Source: Cyanophora paradoxa CCMP329 (Eukaryota; Plantae; Glaucophyta). Taken from it: a stretch of DNA of 64,000 nucleotides. Both the position numbers and the translations under genes were made by a program. Shown piece by piece: positions 16,547 through 48,195 of the stretch. The first letter of the stretch is position 1, and every line of letters begins with the position of its first letter. The stretch spans positions 62,001 to 126,000 of the forward strand of contig QPMI01000143.1 in the NCBI GenBank assembly GCA_004431415.1, given 5' to 3'. Below the pieces are notes generated by a model. The model did no database searches and had not been told where the DNA came from. It saw only the letters and a list, made by a program, of their open reading frames with translations.

Positions 16547-16903
16547 TCTTCCACGCTGCACGCTACGGTGGCCTGCTCGCCGCAAACTCGCCGGCACCAG
16601 CGCGCCCGCCTGCTACGGCTGCTGCTGCGCACCCGCGCGCTCGCGCCTTTTTTCAAAGAATTGCTCGCTGTACCCGCCTGGGAGTAGAAGTTGGGCCGAA
16701 CTCGTCGTGCCATCCTGCGCAGCGCTCCTGGCGGCTACTTGCGCTGCAATTTCAGCTTCAGAACGCCTGCTCAGCGCGCCCGCGGCCGGACAAGGTTCAT
16801 ACGTCGCCGGCGCCTCATCTGAGCGAGAGCAGTTGAGTGCCCTCCTCTTCATCCCCGGCCCGCTGTTATCTAATCTCGTCCCGCGCTCACGCCCGCCGCC
16901 TCC

Positions 16904-19900
16904 ATGGGGCGCCGCGCCAAGCAGAAATCACGCCGAGCGAAGCCCGCGGACGCATGCCGATCGCCGAATCCGAAGCCTGTATGCCTGAACATCGAGGATC
17001 TGCCGGGTCAGCAACCGCGCGGCTCCCGCCGGCGGGACCGGCGCGGCTGACGGCTCCGCTGCGCAGACGGCGTCCTCGTGGGCGTCTTCGCACGCCTGGC
17101 GGCCGAATCAGGGCTCCCGCGCGCCGTCTCGACGCTCGCGGCCGTGTCGCGGCGGTTCCGCGAGCTCGCCTGGTGCCCCTCCCTCATCGACGGCGCCCTT
17201 AAGGTGCCCGCGCGAGCTCCCCCGCGCGCGCGCCCCGCTCGAGCCCGACGGCGCCGCGCGCGCAGCCCGAGCACCCGCGGGACTTCGTCGTGGGGGCGCT
17301 GGCCAAGGTCGGGGCCAGCCTGCGGCGCCTGGACCTGGCGCGCCTGCCGCAGCTCGCCGAGGAGGACGCCCTCGAGGTCCTCGCCGCCGCCCCGGGCCTG
17401 ACGCACCTCTCGGGCGCCTTCCGCACCGCCCGCCCCGAGCGCCGCCGCGGCCCCGCCGGCGGGCCCGCCCCCGCCGTCCACCGCTGCCTGTACCCCCAGC
17501 CCCGCCTCGAGCACCTCGACCTCTCCGGCTCCCGTGTCTTCGCCGACGCCCTCCGAGGCCTCCTCGCCGCCTGCGCCCCCTCCCTCCGCGCCCTCTACCT
17601 CTCGTGCGTACCCCTCCACTCCGCCCCGCTTCGATCTCGTACCCCCCTCACGCCCTTCGTTCCCCTTGCAGGACGGTGGTGATCGCGCACAAGGGTACCG
17701 TGCACTTCCTCAAGGGCGCGCCGCACCCCGCCTCCGTCCTGGTCCCCCTCCGCGGCCTCTCGTGCGCACGCACCCCTCATGCACCGCCCCCCCGCCTTCT
17801 CCGCCCACGAGCCGACGCGGCGCGGCGGCATGCAGGCTGCCGCGCCTGGCGTCGCTGGACGTTTCCCACTGCGTTCTGGAGCCGGCGCACCTCTCCGCCG
17901 TCCTCGCCGCCTGCCCCCGCCTCGCCCGCCTCTTCCTTGCACGGCCCCGCGCCCCCCCGCACGCCCCGGAGTGCTCCTGGGCCGAGTTCCGGGCGCTGCC
18001 CCCCTGGGAGGCGGGGTACCATCGCGTGCTGGCGCCGGCGCTGGCGCGCCCCGGCCTGGCGGTCGTCTCGCGGGACCCCTTCGGCGAGCTGGAGGCGGCC
18101 TTCCGCGAGAAGGAGGCGCGCTGGCAGCGCCTGCGCGCCCGCGAGGCCGCCGCCGCCTTCTGCGCGCCCCTCGCCGCCGGCCTCGACGCCTTCGACGCTG
18201 ACGGCCTCACCCCCTTCCTCCGTGCCCTCTCCTCTTCTTTCCTTGCCTCTTTCTTTCTCGAACGCAAGCTCACGCCCGCCGCAGTGGCCGTCCGGGCCGG
18301 TGCTTTCCACGCGGCCCGCGAGCTCCTCGGCATGGGCGCCCCGCCCCGCCTCGCCCCGCTCGGCCCCGCCGCCCGGCCCCTCCCCGCCCCCTGGTCCGCC
18401 CCGTACCCCTGCGAGGCCTTCCTCCTCCGCGAGCCGTGCGCCCGTACCCCCCTCGCCCTCCCGCGCGCCTCACGCCCTGGAGGGCAGCCTGGGGCCGCCT
18501 CCGCCGGGGTCGCTCCACCGGCTCCTGCGGGAGAAGGCCCACACCGGGCTCGTCCCCGTCGCCCTGGCCCTGGTCTCGCTGGGGGCCGACCTCTACGAGG
18601 AGGACGAGCGCGGCTGCACGCCTTTCGAGGCGCTCGCGTGCGGCGGCTGGGCGGGGCGCGACCGCCTCGCCGCCCTCCGCGCCCTCGCCGGCGTCGAGGG
18701 CTTCGCGCGGCGCGAGCGCGGCGCCCTCCTCGCCGTCCTCGCGGAGGACGAGGAGGAGGCGGAGGGCGGGGCTGACGGGGAGACGGCGGCGGCGCTGCTG
18801 GCCGCGGGGGCCGACCCCTGCGTCCGCGACTGGGCCGGTGCGCCCCGCCGCCTTTCTTCGCCTAAGCCTTCCTTTTTCTTTCTTTCCGTCCGTGTGAGCC
18901 TCCCGCGGCAGACGAGACGCCGGTGCACCGCGCGGCCGCCCTGGGCCGCCACCGCGTCCTCCTCGCCCTCCTCGGTTCGCCCCTTGCACAATTCCTTTCT
19001 TTCCTTTTTCTCTCTCTTTCTTCGAGCCGTGAGCGGCGCGGCAGCCTCGCCGAACGCGGGGCCGGACGGGCGGAACGCGGGCGGGCGGACGCCGCTGCAC
19101 CTCGCGGCGGCGGCCGGGGAGGCCGAGGCGGCGCGGGCGCTGCTCCAGGCAGGGGCCGACCCGGCGGCACGGGACGCGGAGGGGGATACCCCGCTCCACG
19201 CCGCCATCCGGGGGCGCCACTTCGAGCTGGCGAAGCTGGTGCTGGGCCACGCCTCCTGCGACCCGTCGGGCCCCGGGAGGGATGACGAGACCCCGCTCCA
19301 CGCGGCGGCCGCGGCCGGCCCCCGCGCCCTGCCCCTCGCCGAGCTCCTCCTCGAGCGCGGGGCCGACCCGCACCGCCTCGACAGCGCCCACGGTTGTACC
19401 CCCCTCTGGGCCGCCCTCCGCTGCGGCAACCGGCCCCTCGCCGCCCGCCTCCTCTGTGCGCGCCCCCGAGCCCCTCTCTTTAATCCCGTACCCCCCGAGC
19501 CCTTCGCCGCAGCCGTACCCGGAATCGACGTGAACGCGCGGGCCTCCTGCGGCTCCTCCCCCCTACACCTCGCCCTTTTCGCGGGGGACGCCCCCCTCGT
19601 TTCCGTGCGTACCCCTCCCCGCCCCGCTTCCCCCCTCTCCCCTCCGCCCGTCCGACGCCTGTACCCCCCAGGAGCTGCTGTCGCTGGGAGCGGACCACTC
19701 GGCGCCGCTGACGTACGGCGTGCGGCCGCTGCACGTGGCGGCGGCGCTGTCGCCCGAGCGGCCCGACCTCGTCCGCCTGCTGCTGCAGGCCGGCGCCGAG
19801 CCCGACGCGCGCAACGCGGCGGGGCGCGCCGCGCTGCACGCGGCGGTCGAGGCCGGCGCCGCCGCCTCCGCCGCCGAGCTCCTGGAGGCGGGGCGGACCC

Positions 19901-25867: not shown

Positions 25868-26624
25868 TCAAGCCTTGAGGCGGCGCTCGAGCTCGTCGAT
25901 CTGGCCGAGGATCTCCTTGGGCATCTTGGGCTCGAACTCCTTGAAGTAGGCGCGGAGCTCGTCAATGTTCTCCTGCCACTCGTCCGGCCGCACCGCGAAG
26001 AGCTCCGCCATCGTCGCGTCGGTGACCTCCAGGCCCTCCACGTTGATGTCCGAGGGCTTGGGGTGCAGCCCGATCGCGCTCTCGACGTAGTCGGCCTTGC
26101 CGTTGCAGCGGTCGAAGACCCACGCCATCACGCGCGCGTTGTCCGCGTAGCCGGGCCACAGCCACTCGCCCGCCTCGTTCTTGCGGAACCAGTTGACGGT
26201 GAAGAACTTGGGGAGCTTGGAGGGGTCCTGGGCGGCGGCGCCGAACTCGAGCCAGTGCTTGAAGTAGTCGCCCATGTGGTAGCCGCAGAAGGGCAGCATG
26301 GCGAAGGGGTCGTGGCGCAGCTGGCCGGCCCCGCCGGTGGCCGCGGCGGTCATCTCGGACGAGATGGAGGCGCCCATGTAGACGCCGTGCTTCCAGTTGA
26401 AGGCCTCCGTGATGAGCGGCACGACGCGCGCGCGGCGCCCGCCGAAGAAGACCGCCTCGATCGGCACGCCGGCCGGGTCGTCCCACGCCTCGCGGTCGAA
26501 CACGGGGCACTGCGTCGCCGGCGCGGTGAAGCGGGCGTTCGGGTGCGCCGCCTTCTCGCCGCTCTCGGGCGTCCAGTCGTTGCCGCGCCAGTCGATGAGG
26601 TGCTTCGGCTTCTCGTCGGTGAGG

Positions 26625-26656
<32 letters not shown>

Positions 26657-28678
26657 CGCCACGTTCGTGAAGATGGCGTTGCGGTCGATCGCGCGCATCG
26701 CGTTGTAGTTCGACTTGTCCGACGTGCCCGGCGCCACGCCAAAGAACCCGCACTCGGGGTTGATCGCTGCGCGGCAAGCCGGAGGTCAGCGGTGGAGGAG
26801 AAAGGAAGGGAAGGGACGGGGCCGGGCGCGGCGCACCGCGGAGGGTGCCGTCGGGGCCATACTTGAGCCAGGCGATGTCGTCGCCGACGCACTCGAACTT
26901 CCAGCCCTTGAGCTCCGGCGGGGGCTCGAGCATGGCGAGGTTCGTCTTGCCGCACGCCGACGGGAAGGCGGCGGCCATATACTTCTTCTCGCCCTGCGCC
27001 GCCGCGTCAGCCGCCGCCGGGCGCGCGCGCAGAGGTGGCGGGCGGAGCGGGGCGCGCCTGCGGGTTGGTCACGCTGAGGATGAGCATGTGCTCCGCGAGC
27101 CAGCCGTTCTTGCGGCCCATGTTGCTCGCGATGCGGAGCGCGCTGCGCGAGAGGAAGGCTGTGTCAGCGGAAAGCGGGCGATGAAAAGAAAGGAAGGAAG
27201 AACGAGCGCACAAGCACTTCTTGCCGAGAAGGGCGTTGCCGCCGTAGCCGGAGCCATACGACCAGATAGTGGTCTCCTCGGGGAAGTGCGTGATGTACTT
27301 GTTGTCGTTGTCGCACGGCCAGGGGACGTCCTTCTGGCCCGGCGCGAGCGGGTAGCCGACCGAGTGCAGGCACCTGCGCGCGAGGAAGGGATAAGAAAAG
27401 GAAGAGAGAAATGCGTGCGAATGGCAATTGGGCGCACTTGACGAACTCGCCGTTGCCGAGGGTCTCAACGACATCGTAGCCCATGCGCGTCATGATCTTC
27501 ATGTTCGCCACGACGTACGGTGAGTCCGAGAGCTGCGCAAAACGGGCGTCAGAGGAAAGAAGCGCGGAGAGAAGAAGAACATGCAGCCACCTCCACGCCG
27601 ATGTGCGAGATGTCGCTGCCGAGGGGGCCCATGCTGAACGGGATGACATACATGGTCCGGCCGCGCATGCAGCCAGTGTACAGCTTCGTGAGCTTAGCCT
27701 TCATCTCCTGCGCGCGGCAAGGCATAAGCGCGGCATGGGAAAGGCAGAGGACGAGCCCGCACCGTCGGATCACACCAGTTGTTGGTCGGGCCGGCGTCTT
27801 CCGGGCGCTTCGAGCAGATAAAAGTGTTCTGCTCCACACGTGCGACATCGCCGGGGTCCGAGCGGGCGTAGAACGAGCCCGGGCGCTGAGGGCAGATGTA
27901 CGTCAGGGATCCCGCCGAGCAGGCCGCCAGCGAGGAGCAGCCACGCGCGCAGCGTCACACACCTTGGGGACGGCAGTGAATGTGCCGCCCTTCACCAGCT
28001 GCGAAAGGGGACAAGTAAGTTTTTGAACCGACGAGATCGCGCGGCGAGCTCTAGGCGAGCCCTCCGGGGCGGGACGTGCTTCTAATGCGCATCTACATGC
28101 ACGTAGCTTCACGCAAAAATGCACAAGGCTGCCGCTCACCTCGTTGCACATGAACTCGTACTCGGACTGGGAGCCATCGCAGAGATAGACGCGGTCGGGC
28201 TGCGTCATGGCAGCAGTCTCCAGGATGAACTCCACCAGCTTCTCATTCTTGGTCCACGCCTGCCAAAGCAACCGGGCGTCACGGCGAGAAGGCGAGGACG
28301 GCTTCGCAAGCTGCAACCAACGCACCCGGACGTACTGCTCCAGCGCGGTGGGGGCCGACACCTTGAACTCAACATCGACAGAGCGCTGCCGAAGGGACAA
28401 CCGTCAGGCCGGGGAACAGGCGGGGGCCCGCCCGAACGACCACGCACGCGGGTCTTCCGGGCAACGTCGACATCAGAGGCCTCGCTGCGGACGCTGAACC
28501 TTGTCCTTGCAGAGTAGCTGAACTGAGTCTTGTGCTGGAGGCCAAACTTGGCGCGACCGCCAAAGAATTCGCTCCGCCCAACGGCGGCCGGCCGGTGGAG
28601 GGCGGCGAGCTGGGATGTGACGCTCAGGGAAGCGGCCACCCGGGCCGCTGTGGGCACTGGCGTAATGAACGACGCCAT
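25868..28678 (-). CDS. pckG: Phosphoenolpyruvate carboxykinase (GTP-dependent) with N-terminal plastid transit peptide; 10 exons
   Basis: Spliced product has [73 protein letters not shown] (P-loop), [48 protein letters not shown]-terminus MASFITPV...SEFFGG...RFSVRSEA is Ser/Ala/Arg-rich and acid-poor. Confidence 0.97.
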
Positions 28679-29190
28679 AATTCTGGAGATAAGGGAATGG
28701 CGGCGCAGGTTGAGCAGAGCCAACTTGCCGCTTTCTGAAGAGGGGTACGAGAGACGGTGAAAAAAGATGAGTCAGCGTCCACGCTTACCGCCTCTTTTTG
28801 AAACAGGCGCTTTCCACGTCCTCGCCCGTCCTCGCTCGCGGGCTCCCTTCTGCGCTGAGTCCAGTGCCGGGCGCGCCGCGTCCCAGCCCGCTTGCCCCGC
28901 CGGCCAGCCCCGCGGCCCTTCGCGGCGGGCCGTACCCGCCGCGGCCCGCGGCAGCTGTGCAGAGCGATCCGATGATCGCAAAACTTCTGAATTCATGTTA
29001 TGATTAAATGTAAAGCTACAGAGCATTTCTCCGGACATTTACAGTAGCTATCAAGACCGTCGGACGCCTGCTAGCTGGCATTCGAATAAAGACTCTGAAA
29101 AGACGGGAACATGAAAGGGAATTCGAGGCAGCTTGTGACGGATAGCCGAGGGCCCGGGGCGGGGCCCCCCGGGGGGCGAAGGGAAGGTCC

Positions 29191-32028
29191 TCAGGGGCGG
29201 GGGCGGGACGGGGGCGGGACGGGTACGACGAGAGAGCGACCGAGGTCCATGCGGCGGGGCTCGACCTCGGGGTTGGCGCGCGAGATGCGGGGCCAGCTGG
29301 GGGCGTCCCCGTAGAGCTCCCCAGCGAGGTCCCACATCGTCTACCGGTACCCCGCCGCGTCAGCCGCGGGGGGGGCGCCCTCGCCACGCGCCGCTGGCCG
29401 CACCATGCCCCGCCGGACGCGCACCGCCGCCGGGCCCGTCGCCGGCGTCGGAGGGGCACGCCCGCCGGCACGGGCCCCGCCGGCCGCCCGCGTCCCCCGC
29501 GGCAGCGGAAGGAGGAGGGGAAGCCGGGCGCGGGGAGGGGAGGGGGCGGGGGCGGGGGCGGGGCGGCTGGCCCTGTCTGCGGACTCGGCGACGGGGCCGG
29601 CGGGCGCGGTGAGGCGGGCCGCGGCTGGACGGAGCGCCGGCCGCCGGCTGGGCGGCCGGCGAGGCCGGTCTGAGAGAGGCCGGCCGCGGGCTCGCCGGGG
29701 GGAAGGCGGCCCGCGGCGGACGGGGAGGCCGGCCGCGGGGCGGCCGCCGCTTCGCTGGACTCGGGCGCCGGCTTCGGGGCGGGGAGGCGGGCCGGGGCGA
29801 GGCGGGGCGCGGGGAGGCGGGCGGGAGAGGGGCGGGGAGCGGCTGCCGGGCGGAGGCGGCGGGCGATGGCGGAGCCGGCCCCGATGGAGAGGGTGAAGAC
29901 GAGGCCCACAGAGGCCGCGACGAGGGCGGCGCGGACCATCGCCGACCGCAGGAGCCGGCCCGCGGCCGCCTGGCGCCGGGTGAGCGCCGGCGGGCGGGCG
30001 GCGAGGGCAGGCGGCCCGGCGGGCACGCACGGCGAGCGAGACGACGATGTCCCTCAGGGCGGCCGGGGTACCGAGCTCCCAGCGGGCAGGGCCAGTCTTT
30101 GGGGGACAGGGACCGCGATCGGGGCGAGGCCGAACGGCGGGGCGAGGCCGAACGGCGGGGCGGGGCCGGGGCTGCCGGCGGGCGCGGGCGGCGGGGCGGG
30201 CGCGGGGCTCGGGGTCCGGCCCAGCGCCCTTTGGACGGGCGCCGACGGGCTGCCGGGGGCGACGGGGCGAGGCGGCGACCGAAGGGCGCGGCGCGGGCTC
30301 GACCACGAGAGGCGGGCCGCGGGGCCCGAGCAGGATCTGCCCGGCGGGCGGGGCGGGGCGGGCGGGCGGGGCGTCGCCGGCCCGGCGCGACGAGGGGGGC
30401 GGGGGCGCGAAGGGGAGCGCGAGGGCGAGCGGGAGGGGGAGGAGCGGGGGGTACGTGGCTGCGGGCGCTGGTGGGGAAAACGAGGGCACCCAGAGTCCTT
30501 CGGATCGATGGGGGTAGAGGGCTCGGGCTCGGGCTCGGGCGGGGACGCTGGCTCGGGCTCCGGCTCCGGCTCAGGTGAGGGCGCGGGAGGGGCGAGGGGC
30601 TCGGCGTGGGGACGGGAGGGGCGGTGGGGCGGCGGGGCGGGGGTGGCGGGGGCGGCGGGGCGGAGAGGGCTTAGGAGGAGGGCGGGGTAGGGGAGGGGAG
30701 GCGTCGGGGACGGGGAGGGGACGGGGGCCGCGGAGGCGGCGGCGCCGGCGGGGCCAGAAGAGGGCGTGGAGCGATCCCGGGGCGGGGCGGGCGCGGCGGG
30801 GAGGGCACGGAGGCGCTGCGGCGGCCGAGGAAGCGGTTAAGGTCGAAGGCGGCGGGGGGCCGGCCGACGAGGCCCAGCGGGCTCGGAGGGCGCTCCGGAG
30901 AGGCCCGGGGGGCCACGTGAGGCTCCCGCGGCGACGGCGGCGGCGGCGAGCCGACGAAGCGCGCGGCGGCGTCCGCCGAAGTCCGCGGGGGACGCGCCGC
31001 CGGCCGCTGCGGCTGCGGCGCGCGGCCGCGGGGGGCGCCGGCGACGCCGCGGGGGGCGGGGTGCGGGAGCGGGGGCGGGCGCTGCCTCGGGCCCCTGCGG
31101 CCGCGGCGCTCCGTTGCTACGGGGCAGCGGCCCGTCCGAGGCGAAGCCGCGCGCCTTCGGAGATGCCGACCGGGCCCGAGGCGGCGGCGGCCGCGGCGCG
31201 GGCCCCGACGGCGCTGACGCCTGGCGGGGCGCCCCGAGGATGGTTGGCGGGCCGGCAGGGGGCGCTTGGGAGGGCCGCGGCGGCTGCGCGGGCAGCGGCG
31301 GCGGAGGCGGCGGCGCGGGCCTCGAGGGCGGCTGCGAGCCCGCGCCGGCGAGCCACGGCCAGGTCCTGGGCCACGGCTGCGGGGCGCGTGAGCCGAGCGG
31401 CGCCGACACGGCCCAGATAGCGGAGCAGGCGAGCCGACCTGCTCTCCCTTCTCCTCGTCCTGCTCCGGGCCGGAGCGCATCCGCCGGCTCGGCTTGGCGG
31501 TTCGCGGCTGGCCCATCTCGGCGATCATCGACGTCACCAGCAGCGAGAGAGGCGCCAGCTCCGGATCCTGCGAGGCGAGCGCGGCGCGTGGGCTTCACTC
31601 GGCGTCCGCGGCGGCGGCGGAGCGCTGACCCGCGCGAGGGCGTTCAAAGTTGCGAAGAGGTCCTCGACGTGGAAGTCGAGGGAGGGCAGCTCGGGCGAGT
31701 GGGCGGCGCCATCTCGGTCATCTCGTCCGCGCGCCCGCGCGTCGCCGCGGCCGTCGGGTCCCGCCGACGCCACTATGACCGGCGAGATGGGCGCCGCGTT
31801 CGAAGGCGCGGCCAGGCGCCGGACGAGGAACTGCCTCTTGAACAGGGCGATGCTGTCACCAAGGTGAGCGCCGCAGAATCGCACGCGGCGGGCGGCGGCT
31901 GCCCGTCCAATCAAGCTGATCGCACGCGCGGCCTCCCCGCGGACGCTGAGCAACGACGATTCCGGTCGATGAAATGGGAGAGACGACGCGGAGCCGGGGA
32001 TGGCGCCCAGCGCGAAGGCGGCCGCCAT
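29191..32028 (-). CDS. Plastid-targeted single-pass membrane protein with C-terminal LysM domain
   Basis: Exon 1 MAAAFALGAIPGSASS...RRVRFCGA...SPVIVASA resembles a glaucophyte transit peptide; long Pro-rich region; TM AMVRAALVAASVGLVFTLSIGAGSAIARR; last exons splice to VRVRRGM/TMWDLAGELYGDAPSWPRISRANPEVEPRRMDLGRSLVVP (LysM consensus V..GDTLW.IA...YG....W..I..AN......L..G..L.IP); stop 29191-29193. Frame is ambiguous in the Pro-rich GC runs. Confidence 0.75.
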
Positions 32029-32263
32029 CGCGACTTTGCCGCCACCTTGAGCTTCGAAGTCTCTCTACCGTACCCCGCTCCCCTCCTCCCCCCCCCCAGT
32101 TGCAGATCGCTCTCGAACTGCGCGCATGCGCGCCCCTGCAGCTGCACTATCGACATCTGTCTGGTGCCGATTCCTAGAGGGCTATCTCCCTGCTACGCCT
32201 GGCTACATGTACAAGCGAATTCGAAAAAGAGCTCGGCTAGCGCTCAGAAACGGTCGCTGCTAG

Positions 32264-32681
32264 CTAGTACTGGTTGAAGTACGTCGGGTCGTGGTAGGCA
32301 GGGACGTAGGAGGCGCGGCTCCAGACGAGCATCATGTCCGTGCGGTCCTCCTTCCGCCGCCGGCCCTTGGGCGACCCGCCGCCGCCCTCCGTGCCGCCGG
32401 CCCCGGCCGCCGCCTGCGTCTTGGCCTTCGAGCCCTTGGCCTGGGGCAGCGCGTAGGGCGAGACCGAAGGCTTGGTCCGCGGCGGCTCCGGCGGGGGCGA
32501 AGGGGCCGGGCGGGCCGGCGGCGGGATCCGCTTCTGGTGGCGCACCTCCGGCGCAGGCGCCAAAGCCTTCTTGCCGGGCCGCCTCCCCCCCTCCTCGGAC
32601 CCTTCGTCCAGCAGCGCCCGGGTCTCCGGTATCGGCGCGATCGATGGCGCGCTCGCCGTACCCCGCCCGCCGGCCCCGAGC

Positions 32682-32717
<36 letters not shown>

Positions 32718-35700
32718 TGGCGCGGGCCCGGCTGCGGCAGGCTCGGCTCGCTCTGCGCCCGCCCGAGCCCGTGGCCGGCGCCGGGGCCGGGGCCGGGGAC
32801 CGGCGAGGCCGAGCGCCCCTCGCCCTCGGACTCGAAGGACTCCTCCGCGTACCCCTCCTCGCCGCTCGCGGAGGCGCCGCCGGGCCCGGGGGAGGCCGGG
32901 GCCGAGCCCCGCCCCCGGCCCCGGCCCCGCCCCCGCTCCTCATGCTCCTCCGGCTCTTCCGGCTCCTCTGCCGCCCCCTCCTCCTCCTCCAGCCGGCCCA
33001 GAGGCGGCTCGGGCCCCGGCGACGTGGACGGCGCAGCCGCCTCCCGCGGCGGCCGCGGCTCCAGCGACACGTCCGCGGCGGAGAAGCGGTGGGGGTACAG
33101 CTCCTTCGCCAGCCGCTTCCTCGCATCCCGCTGCGGCGGAATAAACAAGCAAACGTGAGCCGGGGGGCGAGCCAGCAGATAAGGGCGCGAAGGGAGCGCA
33201 CCTTCTCCTTGAGGAAGGCGCGCTTCTTCTCCTCCCACTCGCGCTGGCGCTCGGCGCGCCGCCGCTCGTCCCGCGAGAGCATGGAGGGCGGCCGGAAGGG
33301 CGCAGCCGAGCCCGAGGCGGAGCCCGAGCCCGAGCCGACGGAGGGGGCGCTCTGGCTCCGCCGCATGGAGCCCGGGGCGGAGGAGGAGCCGCCGGGCGGC
33401 CCCGGCGGGGGCAGGAGCCGCCCCGGGGCCTCCCCCAGGTCCTCCCCCTCCTCCGACTCCCCGCCCGACTCCTCGCCGCCCTCGGGGCCGGACTCCTTGA
33501 GGGGCGGCATGCGCCGGCGGCTGAAGTTCTCCGAGGGCGTCTCGAGGCCGGCCTGGGTGATCGCCTGCGCGGTCCAGAGCTTGTCGGGGGGCGGCCGCAG
33601 CCCCTCGAAGCGCCGCTCCATCGCCACCCGCCGCGCCTCGTCGATCGCCGTGTACACCCGGTAGCAGTTCCTGCACACCTTGACCTGCGCCCCAGATCGG
33701 ATCAGATCGGATGATCCGATATGATCGGATTTCATCTGATCTGATCTGACCTCGGAGTAGTACATGGCGGGCTTGATCTGCTCCCAGCCGGGCAGGCTCG
33801 TGTAGCAAGCCTCGAGGGGGGGTACGTCGGGCGTCTCGGGGACGACCCGCACGGGGGGGAAGAGCGTCAGCCGCTTCTTCCTCCGCTCCGCCAGCGCGCC
33901 CAGCATCGCCGAGATCGCTGCGGGGCGGCGGCGCGTCAGGGGGTACGGGGTCGGACAGGTCGCGGGGTACAGCGAAAAGCGCGGCGCGCCCTCCTCGTCC
34001 TCGGGGGTGACGAAGGTGCGGTCGGATAGGATGGCCTTGCGGGTGCGGTGCCGGTTGGGGATGGGGCGAACGGTCTCCTGCACGGAGCCGACGACCTTGC
34101 GCTCGCCGGCCCGCCGGCCCGCCGCCGCCGCCTCCTCCGCCTCCTCCTCGTCCTGGTAGTACGCCCTGCCGGACGGCGCTAAGCGCGAGCCGCGAGGCGA
34201 GGAGGGCGAGGGCGGGGCGGGGTAGGGGCGCACGCGGCCGGCTCCTCGCCGTCGTCGGTGGGGGAGGCGAAGCCCGGGCGGGCCCCAGGGTCCAGGATCC
34301 GCCGCACCTGCCCGCCCCGCCCGCGTTAATCCAGCAGGGGCACATCGAAGTGAGCGGGAGAGCGGCGCCCGGGCGGGCGGGCGGACCTTGACCTCCTCGG
34401 CGCGGAGGCGGGCGACCCTGCGGCGGGCGGCGGTGTGGAGCTGGCGCCGCCGGCTCCGCTCCATCCGGTCCAGCACGACGCTCTTGTACAGCACCTGCGC
34501 GCCGGCAGGGCGGCCGGATCAGATCGGATCGCTACAGGGCGGACGGATGAGAGAGAAGGGGAGTGCCTTGTAGTAGCCGGCGTCCTCGTCCTTGCGCTCG
34601 ACGACGGCGCGCTTGATGTTCTCGATGAGCATCAGCAGCTCGTGGTTGGCGACGACGTCCCGCCGCGCCGCCCCCGCCTGCACCGTCTCCACCACCTGCC
34701 CGGGCGCGACGCCGTCAGCCGCGGCCGGCTCTCGCGAGCCTCGCGCCTCGCTCGCTCGCCTGGAGGACGCGGGACTTGCGGAGGCCCTCCTGCTCGGCCT
34801 GCATGTCCACGTCGCAGTAGTCGCCCCGGCAGAAGTTCCGCTGCTCCCGCACCACGGGCGCCGCCCGGCCCCGCAGGATCTCCGAGAGCGGCGCGCCCGG
34901 CCCCGGCGTCCGCATCCGGAACGCCTTCACCTGGATGAACCACCAGTCGCCCCGCTTGTCTGCGGAGAGAGAGAAGGAACCCGATCGATCAGGGGCGACC
35001 TAAGAATGAGAGTGGGAGGCGGCGGGCGGGCCCTTGATCCAGTCGGCGACGAGCTCGTCGAATGGTACGCTGAAGACGGTCTGCTCCATGTGGTGCCGCA
35101 GCGCCCCCGTCAGCTCCTGCAGCTCCGCGTTCGCCTTGCCTGCGGCGGGATGAGACGCGCGAGCGAGCGAGCGAGGGGGCGGGGCGGGGCGGGGCCGGGC
35201 TGAGGCGCGCCGGCGACGGGGATCATGGCGCAGCCGTCGAAGCGCTCGGCGTCGGTGCAGTAGCGGCGGCGCGGGTCCGCCTCGGCGCTCTCCTCGCAGA
35301 GCTCCCGCCCCGAGATCATCCAGGTGAACGACTTGCCGGCCCCGGCGCGCCGGTGCACGCAGCGGGCGACGAAGGGCTTGCCCCCGTTGCTCCAGACGAA
35401 CTTCTGCAGGACCCAGGCCTCCAGCGACGAGACGCTCTCCGAAAAGGCCTTGAGGCCGTTGTAGTCCAGCACCGCCAGCTCGTTCCTCGTGTAGCGCTCC
35501 GAGGCCGGCTTCGCCATCTTCTTCAGCACGGCGACGGGGTACCCCTCCGGCGGCTCCTCCCCCGCGCGGGGCTTGAAGATCCGGTCGGCGATGCCGCGCT
35601 CGTCGATGTGGTCGACGCGGCGGACGCAGCCGTCGGCGCGGGGGGTGTAGAAGAGGGACTGGATGGGCGCCCCCACGTCGTCCGGGTCCGACGAGAGGCC

Positions 35701-37184
35701 CTCCGGGGGGCCCTCCGGCAGGAAGACCACCGTGGGGGGTACCGGGATCCGCAGCCGCGACGCCCCGCCGTCCCGCACGATGAACTGGCGACGCCGTCAG
35801 GGGCGGGTGGGAAAGAGGGGAGGGGGGGGGAGGCCGCACGGGGTAGAAGGCGAGGCAGGGCTTGACGCCTGGGGGCATGGAGTTCTCGTAGTCGTACTCC
35901 GGGGGCTGGAACGAGGCCTTCTTGAGCGTCTCCGCGTAGACCTTCTTCCGCTGCCTTAGCTCTGCCGCCTTCTTGGCCTTCTCCGCCCTGGGACCGGGGC
36001 CGGGGCCGGCTCGACGGGTGGCGGGTGGCGCGGGGCGGGGGGCGTGGGGCACGGGGGCGAACGCACTCGAGGTTGGCCCTGTGCCTCGCGAGCTCCTCGG
36101 CGGTCATGGGCGGCGGCGGCGGCGGCACCGTGAACTGCGAGACGAAGGGCGGCGCCGGCGGCGCCGGCGACTGCGGCGGCGGCGGCGGCGCCTCCGGCTC
36201 CGACTTGGGCGGATCCTGCGCCCCGGCCGGCTCGCTCGCTTGAGGGCGGGAGGGCGGGCGGGCGGGCGGGCGGGGCGCGCCTTGCCGGCGAGCGCGTCGT
36301 CGTACGTGGCGAAGTCGAACTTGGCTCCTCCCTCCGCGCCGCCCTCCCCGCTCGCCTCGCCCTCGTCCCGCTGGCCCCCGCGCGCCCCGCCCCCGCCCCG
36401 CCCTCCTCCTCCCCTTCCGAGAAGCGGGCGCGGCGGCCGGCCTCATCCTCCCCCTCCGACGAGGCGGGGGCCTGCAGGGCGAGCCTCCGGCTGCTCCCGG
36501 CGGACCGCTGCGTCCCCGTCCTGCCCGTCGTCGATCCCGCCCGCGAGGAAGGCTGCGGGCGCGCGCAGGCCTCGGCCCGGGGCGTCGGGCGGGGCCGGGC
36601 TGGGCGGCGCCGCGGACCCTGTTCTCGCGGGAAGAGCCCGAGAGGCGCCCCGTGCTGCGCGGCCGGGCCGCATCCTGCTCTGCGTCCGCCGGGGGCGACG
36701 GCTCCTCCGGCGCGGCCGGCGCGGGGGGCGGCGACGCCCGCAAGTCGTCTCCGCTCGCCGCGCTGCGGTCGGGTCGGCCGGGCGCTGCGGAGCGCGCAGG
36801 CGGGGCGCGACAAACCTGCCGCCGCCTTCTCGCCTGCTCTTCGCCGCGGGGGCCTCTCCTATGGCCGTAAGCCGCTGCTCATCGGCGTCGTACTTCAGGA
36901 GCCGGTTCAGGTCGCTGCGGACGTTCTTCGCTAGGCTCATAGTATCCTTGCCGAGGAAGTTCTCCCCATCGAACTCCCATTCCTCTGCACGCCGCGCGGG
37001 TCCTAGGTTAGCGGCCACCGGCTACTTCCGCTGCAGGCGCGGGGCGGTGCTGGAGCGAGAGCTGAGCTTCTCAAGCTTAGCTAGATGACCCGTGTGTGCT
37101 ATCTGCGGGTGCAACTGGCCGCCCACTCGCACCTTTCGGGTCCTTCTGGACGACCTTCTTTGGGAGGTTGTGCTTCCACGACAT
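32264..37184 (-). CDS. Gene A: uncharacterised protein with ATP-grasp-like segment and Cys pairs (intact copy)
   Basis: Spliced MSWKHNLPKKVVQKDPK/EEWEFDG...; globular core LRIPVPPTVVF...VAVLK...WVLQKFVWSNGGKPFVARC...ELVADWIK/DKRGDWWFIQVKAF; FCRGDYC and VCRNCYRVY; acidic/Pro-rich tail to stop at 32264. Fold is a guess from motif spacing. Confidence 0.7.
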
Positions 37185-37618
37185 GCGCTCGCGTTGCCGA
37201 GAAGCGCTCTCTCGGCCGTTCCGCGAGCCCTTCTATCGCGCTACGCTTTTGGTCTGGGGGAATGTTTGCGGTGGGGGTACAGGGGCGCTGGAGACTCTGA
37301 CCTGACTCGGCTCTCGGTCCCGCGCTCAAGCTCTGGGCCGAAGTCACAGCGTTGTAAACACCCGCTTGCGGGGCCGGCGGGGTCGATCCTGCGAAGGAGG
37401 AGAGCACCGCAGCTGGTCGAGGTGAGCAGAGCACGCGCGAAGGCGCAGAGCGCGCGTTCGAGCGCTTCGCCGGTTCTTGTTGCTTGCTGACGCTGCCGGG
37501 CACGGCAGCTCGGGTCGCGCGGGCTGCGGCGGCGAAAGTGAAGCTTCGCATGGCCCCTGGCGAGTGCTGAGCGGTCGACGACCTCGACGCTGCGCTTCCT
37601 CGTCGCACTCGGGCGACA
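37185..37618. promoter_or_regulatory. Putative bidirectional promoter of genes A and B (copies at 43272-43703 and 48196-48629)
   Basis: About 430-bp, lower-GC spacer between divergent start codons; nearly identical in all three copies. Confidence 0.6.
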
Positions 37619-39959
37619 ATGTGCGCATACGTCTCACCGCGCACCGCCTCCCGCCTCCCGCCTCGACGGATCGAGCTCAAGCGTTCGCCTCAGGTCGCGC
37701 AGCGCGCCCGTGCACGGCCTCGATCACCTGCACACCTTCGAGGACTTCAAGAGGTTCTTCCCCGAGCTCGGCGCGCCTCAGGTGCGATCCGCGGGGGGCG
37801 CGTGGCCGCTCGTTCGCCTGGCGCCGACGCGGCCGCGCGGCGCAGCACGGCCTCTCGTGCCTGGAGGACGTCGCGTGCCTGGAGCGGGATGACTACAAGG
37901 AGCTCAAGATGCCTATGGGCATATTCCGCCGCCTCTGCCGCCGGGCGACGGAGCTCGTCGAGGCCCTAAACCGGTGCCCCCGCCCGCGCCGCGCCGCGCC
38001 GCGCCGGCCGCGCCGCTGCGGGGCTCCCGGCGACGCGCGCGCACGCGCAGGCCCGAGGCGGTCGTAGTCGACGATGCGGAGCCGCCTCCGGCGACCGCGC
38101 CCTCCGGATCGGCGACGCCGGCGCCCTCGCCGGCGCCGGCGCCAGCGGCCCCCTGGCACCTCCTCGGCGGCGACGCCGGCGCGGGGGCGGCGCGGGAGAG
38201 CGACGGCGAGGCGCGCGCGGCGACGCCGCTGCCCGCGCCGGCGGCGGCGGCGCGGCTCGCGCTGGGCGAGTGGCACCCGACGGAGGTCGAGGTGGCCGAG
38301 GCGGAGGACGAGGGCGAGGCGGCGGCGCCGGAGGCGGCGGCGGCGGCGGCGGCGGAGCCCGTGGAGCTGCAGCCCGCTCCTGACAGCGCGGACGCCGAGA
38401 TGGCCGGTGCGCCTGCCGCCGCGCTCCCGCCTCCGCCTGCGCGCCTGAGCGCCCGTGCAGAGGCGCCGCCGGTGCCGGAGGAGAAGCCGCGGCGCCTGGT
38501 CGTGCCCCTGGGGCCGTTCCGGCCGGACGCGCCGGGCGAGCCGGCGCGGGTCTCGGGCGGCGGGCGGCGGCGCGGGGGCGCCCTCGGCCTCCCCCTCTGC
38601 CTCCTCCTCGAGGCGCACGCGCGCCACGCCGAGGTCCTCGAGCGGGCCGCCCTGAAGCGCGCCGCGGGGGCGGGCGGCGAGGAGGAGGCGGAGGCGGAGG
38701 CGGAGGCCGAGATCGCGGAGAGCCTCTGCACGGACATGAGCGAGGAAGATGAGGAGGAGGAGGAGGAAGAGGAGGCGGGGGCGGCGGCGGGGGCCGCGCG
38801 GGCGCCGTCGGAGGAGGCGGAGGAGTCGGACGCGGTGGACTCCGAGTCGGTCGGGGGCGACGCGGGGCTCGAGGCGGCGGCGGCTGCGGAGGAGGAGGAG
38901 GAGGAGGAGGAGGAGGAGGCTTTGGAGAGGCGGGATGAGGCGGGGGACCCCGAGGAGGCGAGGAGGCGGCGGGACGAGGCGGCGGCGGCGAGGCGGGCGG
39001 CGCTGGAGGCGAAGTGGGAGGCCCGGGCCGACCGCGCCGCGCGGGGCGTCCCCGGGGAGGGGTACGCGGAGCTGCGGGAGCGGCTCGCGGGGCGCCGGCC
39101 GAGGCTCGTCGAGTGGCTCTCCCGCCTCGAGGGGGCGCCGAGGCGGCGCCGGCGCCCGAGGCTGGGCCCTCCTCCTCCGCCGCCGCCGCCGCCCGCCCCT
39201 CAGCAGCCGGACCCTCCCTGGGCGGCTCGTTCGGTGCGGGGCGCCGCGCGGGGCCCCGGCACGCCTGCTTCACTAACAGGCGGCCGGGGCGGGGCAGGGG
39301 AGCCGCCGGCGTGGTGGGCGGAGGAGCTGGCGCGCATGCAGGCGGCCTGGGAGGCGGCGCGGCGGCCCACCCTGGAGCGGGCCCAGCGCTCCTTCTGGTG
39401 CCGCCGGGGATCCGCCCCCGCCCCCGCCCCCGCCGGCTTCGCTCACGCGGTGCGGGGTACAGGCGGCGGTACCGGGGGTACGACGTGCGTGTCTGGAAGG
39501 TGCACGAGCTGCGGAGGCAGTCGGAGGGCCTCTCCAGGCGCCTCGGCGAGCTCGCGGGGTGCGCCCTCCCTTCCCCTCAGCTCTTAGCTTTCCCGGCTCC
39601 GCCCCGCTTCTAAATTTAGCTTCTCCAGGGAGATGCCGCGGCTCGAGAGGCACCGGAAGGCCGCGCGGGCCGCCGAGGAGACCTTCTTCGCCCTCCGCGA
39701 CGCCGAGTTCAGGTGAGCCCGATCTGATCTGAGCGCGATAGATCGGATCGGATCGGATCTGAGCCGGCGCCGCGCCAGGATCGGGCTCCTGCAGAGGGCG
39801 GAGGAGCCTGAGGCGGGGGACGAGCGCGGCTCCTCCGGCGAGGAGGGGGAGGAGGAGGAGGCGGGCGGGTACGGGGGGCGGGAGGAGTTTCTCCTGGAGG
39901 GGCCGCCCAGTCCCGACGTCGGTGCGATCCCGTACCCCCGCCCCCCAACCGGTCCGGTC
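37619..39959 (+). pseudogene. Gene B copy 1, 3'-truncated (SAM-like and acidic N-terminus only)
   Basis: Colinear with 48630 to about 50950, then breaks inside an intron; lacks all helicase motifs. Confidence 0.8.
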
Positions 39960-40072
39960 GACAGCCTTTTGGCCGCTGGTACCTCCTAAGGGGTGGACGC
40001 AGGTCGTCCGGTGAGGATGGGAGCGCCTGTGAGGATGGGAGCGCAGCCGTTGCGCGCGATACTACCCCCGCC
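39960..40072. other. Junction filler DNA with internal 16-bp direct repeat
   Basis: About 113 bp matching neither flanking unit; gtgaggatgggagcgc at 40011-40026 and 40029-40044. Confidence 0.8.
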
Positions 40073-43000
40073 ACGAAGGTGCGGTCGGAGAGGATGGCCT
40101 TTCGCGTTCGGTGCCGGTTGGGGATGGGGCGGACGGTCTCCTGCACGGAGCCGACGACCTTGCGCTCGCCGGCCCGCCGCCCCGCCGCCGCCGCCTCCTC
40201 CGCCTCCTCCTCGTCCTGGTAGTACGCCCTGGCGGAGGCGCTAAGCGCGAGCCGCGAGGCGAGGAGGGCGAGGGCGGGGCGGGGTGCGGGCGCACGCGGC
40301 CGGCTCCTCGCCGTCGTCGGTGGGGGAGGCGAAGCCCGGGCGGGCCCCAGGGTCCAGGATCCGCCGCACCTGCCCGCCCCGCCCGCGTTAATCCAGCAGG
40401 GGCACATCGAAGTGAGCGGGAGAGCGGCGCCCGGGCGGGCGGGCGGACCTTGACCTCCTCGGCGCGGAGGCGGGCGACCCTGCGGCGGGCGGCGGCGTGG
40501 AGCTGGCGCCGCCGGCTCCGCTCCATCCGGTCCAGCACCACGCTCTTGTACAGCACCTGCGCGCGGGCGGGCGGGCGGGGCGGGGCGGGGCGGGGCGGGG
40601 CGGCCGGATCAGGTCGCTGCAGGGCGGATGGATGAAAGAGAAGGGGGGCTCGCGCGCCTTGTAGTAGCCGGCGTCCTCGTCCTTGCGCTCGACGACGGCG
40701 CGCTTGATGTTCTCGATGAGCATCAGCAGCTCGTGGTTCGCCACGACGTCCCGCCGCGCCGCCCCCGCCTGCACCGTCTCCACCACCTGCCCGGGCGCGA
40801 CGCCGTCAGCCGCGGCCGGCTCTCGAGCCTCAAGCTTTGCTCGCTCGCCTGGAGGACGCGGGACTTGCGGAGGCCCTCCTGCTCGGCCTGCATGTCCACG
40901 TCGCAGTAGTCGCCCCGGCAGAAGTTCCGCTGCTCCCGCACCACGGGCGCCGCCCGGCCCCGCAGGATCTCCGAGAGCGGCGCGCCCGGCCCCGGCGTCC
41001 GCATCCGGAAGGCCTTCACCTGGATGAACCACCAGTCGCCCCGCTTATCTGCGGAGAGAAGGAACCCGATCGATCAGGGGCAGCCTAAACCTAAGTCTGA
41101 GAGGAAGGACGAGGCGGGCCCTTGATCCAGTCGGCGACGAGCTCGTCGAAGGGTACGCTGAAGACGGTCTGCTCCATGTGGTGCCGCAGCGCCCCCGTCA
41201 GCTCCTGCAGCTCCGCGTTCGCCTTGCCTGCGGCGGGATGAGACGGGCGAGAGAGCGAGGGAGCGGGGCGGGGCGGGGCCGGGCTGAGGCGCGCCGGCGA
41301 CGGGGATCATGGCGCAGCCGTCGAAGCGCTCGGCGTCGGTGCAGTAGCGGCGGCGCGGGTCCGCCTCGGCGCTCTCCTCGCAGAGCTCGCGCCCGGAGAT
41401 CATCCAGGTGAATGACTTGCCGGCCCCGGCGCGCCGGTGCACGCAGCGGGCGACGAAGGGCTTGCCCCCGTTGCTCCAGACGAACTTCTGCAGGACCCAG
41501 GCCTCCAGCGAGGAGACGCTCTCTGAGAAGGCCTTGAGGCCGTTGTAGTCCAGCACCACCAGCTCGTTCCTCGTGTAGCGCTCCGAGGCCGGCTTCGCCA
41601 TCTTCTTCAGCACGGCGACGGGGTACCCCTCCGGCGGCTCCTCCCCCGCGCGGGGCTTGAAGATCCGGTCCGCGATGCCGCGCTCGTCGATGTGGTCGAC
41701 GCGGCGGACGCAGCCGTCGGCGCGGGGGGTGTAAAAGAGGGACTGAATGGGCGCCCCCACGTCGTCCGGGTCGGACGAGAGGCCCTCGGGGGGGCCCTCC
41801 GGCAGGAAGACCACCGTGGGGGGTACCGGGATCCGCAGCCGCGACGCCCCGCCGTCCCGCACGATGAACTGGCGACGACGTCAGGGGCGGGCGGGAGAGG
41901 GCGGGGAGGGAAGGGGGGGCAGAAGCCGCACGGGGTAGAAGGCGAGGCAGGGCTTGACGCCGGGGGGCATGGAGTTCTCGTAGTCGTACTCCGGGGGCTG
42001 GAACGAGGCCTTCTTGAGCGTCTCCGCGTAGACCTTCTTCCGCTGCCTTAGCTCCGCCGCCTTCTTCGCCTTCTCCGCCCTGGGGCCGGGGCCGGCTCGA
42101 CGGGCGGCGGGGGGCGCGGGGCGGGGGGCGCGGGGCGCCGGGGCGAACGCACTCGAGGTTGGCCCTGTGCCTCGCGAGCTCCTCGGCGGTCATGGGCGGC
42201 GGCGGCGGCGGCACCGTGAACTGCGAGACGAAGGGCGGCGCCGGCGGCGCCGGCGGCGACTGCGGCGGCGGCGGCGCCTCCGGCTCCGACTTGGGCGGAT
42301 CCTGCGCCCCGGCCGGTTCGCTCGCTTGAGGGCGGGAGGGCGGGCGGCGGGCGGGCGGGAGGGCGGGGCGCGCCTTGCCGGCGAGCGCGTCGTCGTACGT
42401 GGCGAAGTCGAACTTGGCGCCTCCCTCCGCGCCGCCCTCCCGCTCGCCTCGCCCTCGTCCCCGCTGGCCCCGCGCGCCCCGCCCCCGCCCCGCCCTCCTC
42501 CTCCCCTTCCGAGAAGCGGCGCGGCGGCCGGCCTCATCCTCCCCCTCCGACGAGGCGGGGGCCTGCAGGGCGAGCCTCCGGCTGCTCCCGGCGGACCGCT
42601 GCGTCCCGTCCTGCCGGTCGTCGACCCCGCCCGCGAGGAAGGCTGCGGGCGCGCGCGGCCTCGGCGCGGGGCGTCGGGCGGGGCCGGGCGGGGCGGCGCC
42701 GCGGACCCGGTTCTCGCGGGAAGAGCCCGAGAGGCGCCCCGTGCTGCGCGGCCGGGCCGCATCCTGCTCTGCGTCCGCCGGGGGCGACGGCTCCTCCGGC
42801 GCGGCCGGCGCGGGGGCGGCGACGCCCGCAAGTCGTCTCCGCTCGCCGCGCTGCGGTCGGGTCGGCCGGGCGCTGCGGAGCGCGCAGGCGGGCGAAACCA
42901 ACCTGCCGCCTCCTTCCCGCCTGCTCTTCGCCGCAGGGGCCTCTCCTATGGCCGTAAGCCGCTGCTCATCGGCGTCGTACTTCAGGAGCCGGTTCAGGTC

Positions 43001-43271
43001 GCTGCGGACGTTCTTCGCAAGGCTCATAGTATCCTTGCCGAGGAAGTTCTCCCCATCGAACTCCCATTCCTCTGCACGCCGCGCGGGTCCCAGGTTAGCG
43101 GCCACCGGCTACTTCCGCTGCAGGCGCGGGGCGGTGCTGGAGCGAGAGCTGAGCTTCCTAAGCTTAGCTAGATGACCCGTGTGTGCTATCTGCGGGTGCA
43201 GCTGGCCGCCCACTCGCACCTTTCGGGTCCTTCTGGACGACCTTCTTTGGGAGGTTGTGCTTCCACGACAT
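40073..43271 (-). pseudogene. Gene A copy 2, 3'-truncated
   Basis: Colinear with 34010-37184; ends at ...SDRTFV and reads on into the filler; lacks the VCRNC motif and tail. Confidence 0.8.
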
Positions 43272-43703
43272 GCGCTCGCGTTGCCGAGAAGCGCTCTCTC
43301 GGCCGTTCCGCGAGCCCTTCTATCGCGCTACGCTTTTGGTATGGGGGAATGCTTGCGGTGGGGTACAGGGGCGCTGGAGACTCTGACCTGACTCGGCTCT
43401 CGGTCCCGCGCTCAAGCTCTGGGCCGAAGTCACAGCGTTGTAAACACCCGCTTGCGGGCCGGCGGGGTCGATCCTGCGAAGGAGGAGAGCACCGCAGCTG
43501 GTCGAGGTGAGCAGAGCACGCGCGAAGGCGCAGAGCGCGCGTTCGAGCGCTTCGCCGGTTCTTGTTGCTTGCTGACGCTGCCGGGCACGGCAGCTCGGGT
43601 CGCGCGGGCTGCGGCGGCGAAAGTGAAGCTTCGCATGGCCCCTGGCGAGTGCTGAGCGGTCGACGACCTCGACGCTGCGCTTCCTCGTCGCACTCGGGCG
43701 ACA

Positions 43704-46700: not shown

Positions 46701-46776
46701 CCCCCCGCGCCGCCGCGCGCCCCGCGGCCCCGCGCCGCGAGCCCGAGCCGCCCGTCGACCTGGACGAGGACGCCGA

Positions 46777-46823
<47 letters not shown>

Positions 46824-47700: not shown

Positions 47701-48195
47701 TCCCCGCTGGCCCCCCTCCGGCGCGGCCGGCGCGGGGGGCGGCGACGCCCGCAAGTCGTCTCCGCTCGCCGCGCTGCGGTCGGGTCGGCCGGGCGCTGCG
47801 GAGCGCGCAGGCGGGGCGAAACCAACCTGCCGCCTCCTTCCCGCCTGCTCTTCGCCGCAGGGGCCTCTCCTATGGCCGTAAGCCGCTGCTCATCGGCGTC
47901 GTACTTCAGGAGCCGGTTCAGGTCGCTGCGGACGTTCTTCGCAAGGCTCATAGTATCCTTGCCGAGGAAGTTCTCCCCATCGAACTCCCATTCCTCTGCA
48001 CGCCGCGCGGGTCCCAGGTTAGCGGCCACCGGCTACTTCCGCTGCAGGCGCGGGGCGGTGCTGGAGCGAGAGCTGAGCTTCCTAAGCTTAGCTAGATGAC
48101 CCGTGTGTGCTATCTGCGGGTGCAGCTGGCCGCCCACTCGCACCTTTCGGGTCCTTCTGGACGACCTTCTTTGGGAGGTTGTGCTTCCACGACAT
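47701..48195 (-). pseudogene. Gene A copy 3, 5' stub with internal deletion
   Basis: Matches 42793-43271 plus a short patch from about 42447-42471. Confidence 0.8.

Follow-up and report, generated by a model that had tools for sequence, protein, structure and literature searches.

A membrane-type segment and an intron-split LysM domain at one locus of the Cyanophora paradoxa genome: a candidate tether for the plastid peptidoglycan wall

Here, we present an analysis of a locus on the minus strand of Cyanophora paradoxa CCMP329 DNA, between positions 32028 and 29191 of a 64,000-nucleotide stretch (contig QPMI01000143.1 of assembly GCA_004431415.1, positions 62,001 to 126,000; hereafter the window, numbered from its first letter). 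A first-pass annotation, made from the letters alone, had proposed that this locus encodes a plastid-targeted, LysM-containing anchor of the peptidoglycan wall, and all of the elements that it named were recovered on the minus strand, each in its place. We found that the locus ends in a divergent LysM domain that is interrupted by an intron and is almost certainly part of the same polypeptide as a hydrophobic segment encoded upstream. The window is eukaryotic in character (64-82% G+C), and its G+C content, intron lengths and gene packing agree with the figures published for the C. paradoxa genome, i.e. 67.6% G+C, 9.2 introns per gene with a mean length of 86 bp, and densely packed genes that lie end to end with overlapping untranslated regions (UTRs) and with bidirectional open reading frames (ORFs) noted (PMC6704402). 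In the direction of transcription, the locus comprises the following features:

31630-32028, minus strand, frame 0: first coding exon(s), with the ATG at 32026-32028, MAAAFALGAIPGS..., an Ala/Ser/Arg-rich presequence-like region and then ...LDFHVEDLFATLNALAR
31568-31629, minus strand: intron of 62 nt (GTCAGC...CTCGCAG), leading from frame 0 to frame 2
31439-31567, minus strand, frame 2: small exon of normal composition, DPELAPLSLLVTSMIAEMGQPRTAKPSRRMRSGPEQDEEKGEQ
31377-31438, minus strand: intron of 62 nt (GTCGGC...GCTCAC...CCGCAG), with an alternative GC donor at 31434
30031-31376, minus strand: central low-complexity region, coding-like in frames 1 or 0, then 2, then 1, then 0
29970-30030, minus strand: intron of 61 nt (GTGCGT...GCTCAC...GCCAG), joining frame 0 (...RDIVVSLA) to frame 1 (AAAGRLLRSAMVR...)
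29862-29930, minus strand, frame 1: hydrophobic 23-residue segment, AALVAASVGLVFTLSIGAGSAIA, a transmembrane helix or signal-peptide core
29404-29861, minus strand: Pro-rich spacer, in frame 1 behind the hydrophobic segment and in frame 0 ahead of the LysM intron, ending ...GPAAVRVRRGM
29341-29403, minus strand: intron of 63 nt (GTGCGG...GGCTGAC...CCGGTAG), phase 0, with an in-frame TAG at its end, splitting the LysM domain after its first strand
29191-29340, minus strand: last exon, coding for both LysM helices (1 and 2) and the final strand (TMWDLAGELYGDAPSWPRISRANPEVEPRRMDLGRSLVVP) and for a PPPSRPRP tail, closed by TGA at 29191-29193

The claim that a LysM domain split by an intron forms the C-terminus was borne out by the last exon, the final 49 codons of which (29194-29340), ahead of the TGA, translate to TMWDLAGELYGDAPSWPRISRANPEVEPRRMDLGRSLVVPVPPPSRPRP. 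In this and all other Pfam, library and fold searches, single exons or ORF pieces served as queries. Against a library of 1.84 billion representative proteins (cut-off E≤1e-3), the LysM exon gave 744 matches, 102 of them at E≤1e-10 and the best at 3.7e-24, mostly through at least three repeats; PF01476 was present in all 10 of the top matches scanned, with two to five matched stretches in nine of them. A profile made from 390 library repeats matched the exon with 49 bits (E 2.6e-14) over profile positions 10-49 of 50, a score that is somewhat inflated because the profile was built from matches that the exon itself had selected; this profile found no second LysM match in any frame of the window. 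The exon retains the family's invariant Y, N and P and its nearly invariant G, I, A, P and G. Using codon log-odds trained on the window's confident exons and scored per 40 codons, it reached 19.0 bits, the highest score in the region, with a G+C content at third codon positions (GC3) of 0.92 in frame. From Pfam, the sole signal on the exon alone came from PF23457 (the NFP LysM2 model; E 0.02, 15 bits versus a cut-off of 36). Four of the five best PDB sequence matches were LysM proteins (E 0.05-0.6). The AlphaFold model of the exon had a pLDDT of 81.6 and helices at residues 2-10 and 13-22, where LysM has helices, and seven of its eight best PDB fold matches were stand-alone LysM domains (chitinases or baseplate-complex chains); one of these seven, in PDB entry 9gtp, was also identified as a LysM-domain protein from its sequence. 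By E value, the fold matches of this small fragment were weak (0.24-4), with TM-scores of 0.64-0.72 and root mean square deviations of 1.4-1.9 Å. Judged by its sequence, we conclude that the terminal domain is a true LysM, divergent and of the bacterial "YGD..W..I..ANP" type.

In donor, branch motif, spacing and length, the intron that splits this domain agrees with the introns of the PEPCK gene in the same window. That gene has at least five introns of 62-72 nt with the donor GTGCGC (GCGCGC in one), the acceptor GCGCAG and, in most, a CTGAC branch motif. Across the window, the intron-like motif GTGCG, 30-58 nt, CT[GC]AC, 6-22 nt, AG occurred 31 times compared with 7.7 ± 3.6 times in shuffled sequences, i.e. 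approximately four-fold more often. The motif is found on both strands (e.g. at 2864-2925, 6531-6605, 17604-17671, 33131-33201 and 62652-62715) and could act as a simple intron finder for the C. paradoxa genome. The LysM exon begins at profile position 10, just past the expected end of the first strand and its "GD" turn, and the nine codons before the intron encode AAVRVRRGM, which ranked first among 11 GT-donor options within 560 nt and second among 106 when GC donors were included. We regard AAVRVRRGM as a putative first LysM strand, compatible with this role and not on its own evidence for it. Joining frame 1 straight to the last exon by a 119-nt or a 131-nt intron loses the first strand and scored more than 8 bits worse; these joins were rejected. 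Within the spacer, candidate introns for the change from frame 1 to frame 0 lie at 29584-29630, 29573-29721 and 29577-29656 (GC-AG).

Upstream of the spacer, AALVAASVGLVFTLSIGAGSAIA has a Kyte-Doolittle mean of 1.97 over 19 residues, compared with the threshold of at least 1.6 over 19 aa, with approximately 20 hydrophobic residues in a coding frame, that we used for a single-pass segment. All six frames of the 64 kb contain only 29 segments of this kind, and this one sits where the codon score of frame 1 peaks (13.3 bits per 40 codons). It is preceded by an ATG at 29937-29939 (MVR) and followed by RRLRP. From 29940 to 31479 (1.5 kb), the minus strand is free of ATG codons, and 29939 is the sole ATG between 31480 and 29406; therefore, it is the first start codon for any transcript beginning inside the gene. 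Because the LysM exons have no other start codon available, the hydrophobic segment and the LysM domain are almost certainly in the same polypeptide. The membrane-type segment that had been predicted N-terminal to the LysM domain is thereby retained. The 61-nt intron at 29970-30030 fits the consensus motif, ends 31 nt upstream of ATG 29939 and joins an open frame-0 exon to the frame of the segment.

At the 5' end, ATG 32028 opens a 164-codon ORF with an in-frame stop 13 codons upstream. The codon log-odds of the first exon(s) are positive over 31582-31900 and weak over 31855-32028. The first 60 residues contain 23% Ala and 13% Ser, with seven Arg plus Lys and three Asp plus Glu, and the N-terminus MAAAFALGAI has Phe at position 5. 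According to the rule for cyanelle presequences, Phe lies within the first 10 residues of an Ala/Ser-rich sequence with net positive charge and few acidic residues (PMC4510345), and one protein of the cyanelle proteome starts with MAAAFACSIP; the N-terminus of the locus has the sequence features of a cyanelle transit peptide, which are necessary and not sufficient for import. An in-frame intron of 135 nt at 31853-31987 is possible in the first exon region. A consensus-like intron with a GTGCGA donor at 31853-31925 is out of phase with ATG 32028 and leads to a stop at ~31775, and was rejected. The intron at 31568-31629, of a length typical of the genome, was picked at every penalty of the gene-model search described below. 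The small exon behind it had a codon score of 18.5 bits per 40 codons, second only to the LysM exon, and a GC3 of 0.86-0.90 versus 0.56-0.62 at second codon positions. We find exons 1 and 2 and their 62-nt introns convincing. The choice of donor at 31438 or 31434 decides whether an Ala-rich or a Pro-rich frame comes next.

The central region (30031-31376) contains 25-36% Pro in every minus frame, and the spacer behind the hydrophobic segment contains 31%, in line with the long Pro-rich region and Pro-rich spacer that had been described. Between 32028 and 29191, the coding-like signal passes from one frame to the next along the minus strand: 18 windows scored at least 8 bits versus two on the plus strand. 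In a scan of 29100-32100 for tandem repeats, the period was divisible by three in 21 of 32 rows. The G+C content of 60-nt windows stays at or above 0.60 within the region and falls to 0.33-0.57 at both flanks. Gene models were obtained by a dynamic-programming parse with a variable intron penalty in which codons were scored across junctions.

Altogether, we tentatively favor, at slightly less than even confidence, that positions 32028-29191 of the minus strand are one intron-rich nuclear gene encoding a tether between the plastid wall and a membrane. What we observed is the homology to LysM, the intron within that domain, the hydrophobic segment and one strand that is coding-like throughout; the single transcript, the targeting, the topology and the ligand are what we infer from them. 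The two introns on either side of the part encoding the membrane segment and the LysM domain fit the consensus, in support of the proposal. The product would begin with a cyanelle-type presequence (MAAAF...) and a short stretch of normal composition; a long, disordered part rich in Pro, Ala and Arg would lead to a single transmembrane helix, behind which the Pro-rich linker and the one divergent LysM would lie. The precursor would enter the plastid through the envelope import machinery. The hydrophobic segment would then lodge in the inner envelope membrane, either by stop-transfer or by re-insertion from the stroma via a Sec translocon, which is present in the cyanelle inner envelope (PMC2600650). 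The N-terminal low-complexity part would remain stromal, while the linker and the LysM domain would extend into the compartment of the peptidoglycan wall, and there LysM would bind glycan strands without cutting them; the outcome would be a tether from wall to membrane. For the transit peptide proposed in the first-pass annotation, the Phe rule and the composition hold and MAAAFACSIP provides a precedent, whereas a shared transcript of the MAAAF and LysM exons, and import itself, are presumed.

Several observations weigh against this proposal. Gene models spanned 5-13 introns, fewer as the intron penalty rose, and their middle part is not to be trusted; between 31376 and 30031, several frame changes depend on introns that are GC-AG or off the consensus, and in the spacer the passage from frame 1 to frame 0 requires a non-consensus intron or an assembly indel. 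Our word and library searches returned no transcript, gene model or orthologue of any exon; specifically, neither the 336-aa transmembrane ORF nor the 164-aa N-terminal ORF had a match by word search. No library match of the LysM exon exceeded 44% identity, and no orthologue of the locus was among the best 150 of the 744; because the ranking favors multi-repeat proteins, single-LysM orthologues could rank lower. In the text portion of one cyanelle proteome supplement, no peptides of the locus or of the PEPCK neighbor appear. The extension of ~600 residues ahead of the membrane segment far exceeds any transit peptide. The segment is Arg-rich on both sides (RLLRSAMVR before, RRLRP after), so the positive-inside rule gives no orientation, and it ends with AIA followed by RR, resembling a signal-peptidase site. 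With respect to the domain, AAVRVRRGM scored -0.2 bits against profile positions 1-9, and PF01476 gave no report on the LysM exon alone, even at E≤10, unlike the 81 of 90 equally truncated bacterial repeats that it matched at E≤0.01. The Pfam test that had been proposed for this domain therefore came out in part: the subfamily profile and the PF01476-carrying relatives match, and PF01476 itself stays silent on the exon. Finally, the LysM sequence cannot tell peptidoglycan from chitin as a ligand.

The best sequence matches of the exon are bacterial LysM proteins of the YGD..W..I..ANP type (33-47% identity per repeat), which share the order of N-terminal hydrophobic segment, Pro-rich linker, LysM and PP.P tail; in 111 of the best 150, a hydrophobic segment opens the protein and linkers follow, and ATG 29939 falls exactly where these proteins start, a further point against a start at 32028. 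In these relatives, an N-in transmembrane segment is followed by a linker and periplasmic LysM, an arrangement that speaks for the topology proposed above. They usually carry at least three LysM repeats, whereas the locus has one and thus lacks their tandem array; its copy is also eukaryotic, with spliceosomal introns and extreme G+C content, and farther from the Pfam LysM. The best single repeat (P0027, 40 bits) shares RANPEV(D/E)PRR with the LysM exon, the similarity to the relatives often extends into the PP.P tail behind the domain, and one relative (P0047) likewise has Arg after its membrane segment. Of 20 clusters looked up, only five have a source name: three bear the label Planctomycetota or Phycisphaerae and two just "YgaU." These names hint at a non-cyanobacterial source of the LysM domain; a domain of 40 residues and a handful of names do not establish an origin.

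Because ATG 29939 and the segment behind it reproduce the layout of the bacterial relatives, a division of the locus into two genes is a serious rival, although we consider it less likely than one gene. The downstream gene would then start at ATG 29939 and encode ~200 residues, namely a signal peptide or anchor (MVRAALVAASVGLVFTLSIGAGSAIA, then RR), a Pro-rich linker and one LysM, for the secretory pathway or an outer membrane, and the MAAAF gene would be unrelated. The ATG lies directly ahead of the hydrophobic segment, a frame-1 stop at ~30050 could end the upstream gene, and the genome is packed densely enough, with overlapping UTRs, for two genes to abut (PMC6704402). The streptophyte protein PPASP, described by Van Baren et al. 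in 2016, has the same layout without a transit peptide (PMC4815162). However, the locus lacks an AT-rich spacer of the kind present at both flanking gene boundaries: over the ~470 nt ahead of 29939, the G+C content is 0.73-0.95, and the whole 2 kb up to 32028 stays at 0.60 or more. The coding-like signal persists to ~30256, and the strong frame-0 signal at 30256-30490 leaves at most ~300 nt ahead of ATG 29939 in which one gene would have to end and the promoter of the next would have to fit. Moreover, the consensus 61-nt intron just upstream of this ATG joins an open frame to it, and a word search spanning products of 185-588 aa found no match.

PPASP also bears on the claim that the architecture is undescribed, which we do not uphold: PPASP and 111 of the best 150 bacterial relatives combine a transmembrane segment with LysM. 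PPASP, with its transmembrane segment at the N-terminus and its LysM at the C-terminus, occurs in streptophytes that keep the peptidoglycan pathway, including the embryophytes of a Phytozome survey that do so; it was reported as undetected in the glaucophyte. Its conserved 21-residue hydrophobic N-terminus comes without a transit peptide, leading its authors to suggest the outer envelope, and it was proposed to touch wall sugars between the envelope membranes (PMC4815162). Compared by published layout, the locus resembles PPASP in that a hydrophobic segment precedes one LysM at the C-terminus, that a catalytic domain is absent and that the host is a photosynthetic eukaryote which retains peptidoglycan synthesis for its plastids. 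The locus differs in that the transmembrane segment of PPASP is at the extreme N-terminus, whereas in the one-gene reading ~600 residues precede it; the layouts match only if the protein starts at 29939. If the locus is one gene, its novelty would lie in the plastid presequence and the ~600 residues of low complexity that precede the membrane segment, in an ARC6-like topology with a wall-binding head.

A second alternative, which we think improbable, concerns the ligand: whichever gene structure is right, the LysM domain might not serve the plastid wall and might instead bind GlcNAc glycans, of the chitin type or others, or peptidoglycan from external bacteria. It would then act on the surface of the cell or within the endomembrane system and take part in sensing, adhesion or feeding. 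LysM domains bind peptidoglycan and chitin alike (PMC4815162), several of the nearest solved folds are LysM domains of Volvox and fern chitinases, and targeting to the plastid is itself presumed. On the other hand, the nearest relatives by sequence are envelope proteins of bacteria, and the named ones are annotated as peptidoglycan-binding; under the single-gene model, the N-terminus fits the cyanelle presequence rule. The plant LysM receptors (LYM/LYP/CEBiP and the LysM receptor-like kinases) resemble the locus in carrying a LysM ectodomain on a membrane anchor. They differ in having three LysMs, Cys-x-Cys linkers, a signal peptide and a GPI anchor or kinase at the plasma membrane, none of which was seen at the locus.

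We also considered that the locus is a decaying or mis-assembled relic, i.e. a transferred bacterial LysM fragment in low-complexity, GC-rich DNA that either yields no functional product or carries frameshifts from homopolymer errors. The single LysM in place of the three in relatives, the degenerate first strand with its usual Asp replaced, the position of the exon below Pfam LysM detection, unlike its relatives, and the frame changes lacking good introns would all fit such a relic. Against this stand the highest codon score of the region in the LysM exon, its high GC3 in frame, the retained invariant and nearly invariant residues, the predicted fold (pLDDT 81.6) and the well-formed intron that flanks the exon, and we consider a relic very improbable. 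The remaining idea, that the real gene lies on the G-rich plus strand, with a Gly/Arg-rich product, and that the minus-strand signal is an antisense artefact, was rejected on the codon-window scores and retains next to no probability, because the long plus-strand ORFs (e.g. 29866-30690 and 30575-31420), the two plus-strand windows of at least 8 bits (one of 15.2 bits at 31309-31428) and the bidirectional ORFs of the published genome (PMC6704402) are set against 18 such windows on the minus strand and three of three consensus intron matches, the LysM homology, the hydrophobic segment and the exons of normal composition on that strand.

Returning to a single gene for a plastid wall tether, its product can be compared with two known systems. 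DipM/NlpD combines LysM repeats with a C-terminal M23/LytM peptidase, hydrolyses peptidoglycan and is the LysM protein known from the plastid of C. paradoxa (PMC4015805); the literature searched yielded no second plastid LysM protein and no paper joining "muroplast" and "LysM." The two are alike in LysM-type recognition of plastid or septal peptidoglycan and in the organism group. They differ in the M23 hydrolase domain and the domain order of DipM; at the locus, the stop comes nine residues past the LysM. In agreement with the stated absence of an M23 peptidase, the ORF pieces from the three minus frames matched neither M23 nor any other Pfam family apart from the weak LysM hit, and the product is therefore not DipM/NlpD.

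ARC6-type proteins have a transit peptide, a stromal J-like FtsZ-binding domain, one transmembrane segment and an intermembrane-space domain, and act as trans-envelope couplers. The proposed topology of the tether is the same, with the N-terminus stromal and the C-terminus between the envelopes; ARC6 differs in its unrelated sequence, which lacks LysM, and the stromal part of the tether would be low-complexity. In a bolder version that we offer as speculation and hold to be quite improbable, the protein would be a glaucophyte-specific trans-envelope coupler in which a disordered stromal scaffold, an inner-envelope helix and a wall-bound LysM link stromal processes (the FtsZ division ring, or nucleoid or thylakoid attachment) to the peptidoglycan septum. 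Such a coupler would have been made by adding a presequence and a large extension to a transmembrane-linker-LysM gene from non-cyanobacterial (Planctomycetota-like) bacteria.

The surroundings of the locus can be described as follows. Downstream on the minus strand, at 25868-28723, lies the gene for GTP-dependent PEPCK. Its last exon (25871-26785) matches PF00821 (E 1.7e-128), and its N-terminal domain lies at ~28200. An exact look-up of the PEPCK ORF returned no record, a word search with a PEPCK exon found only bacterial-type PEPCK as relatives (~60% identity), and the N-terminus is cyanelle-type in that it fits the Phe-in-first-10 rule (PMC4510345); judging from these sequences, PEPCK may be plastid-targeted and of bacterial type. 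Its top match (P0158, locus L001, positions 9573-11000 of a metagenome contig from the European Nucleotide Archive) is a bacterial PEPCK with an internal duplication of ~100 residues and is unrelated to the LysM locus. Upstream, a minus-strand gene at 32264-34345 ends ...AYHDPTYFNQY* at 32264, 235 nt from ATG 32028; it has a GC3 of 0.94-0.98, strong codon periodicity and a 693-aa ORF piece with no Pfam match. Farther upstream, tandem duplications (34010-39959 versus 40073-46027, 94.6% identical; 42793-47700 versus 47715-52619, 99.5%) span 34010-52619; thus, the genes upstream of the LysM locus sit in an array of repeat units of ~5-6 kb, the repeated ORFs of which (e.g. 35113-35796 and 41077-41880) gave no Pfam match. 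Elsewhere in the window, 15689-16612 on the minus strand is a leucine-rich-repeat exon (LRR_8, E 2.5e-43).

The locus illustrates how the short, intron-split domains of this genome evade ORF- and HMM-based (hidden Markov model) annotation. Glaucophyte plastids are the only plastids with a thick bacterial wall, and how this wall is attached to the envelope and coordinated with division is largely unknown. If our proposal holds, this LysM protein, held in a membrane and without enzymatic function, would offer a concrete candidate for the link between wall and membrane and a counterpart of streptophyte PPASP, which had been reported missing from the glaucophyte. If the relationship to Planctomycetota holds as well, it would suggest a non-cyanobacterial contribution to the plastid envelope.

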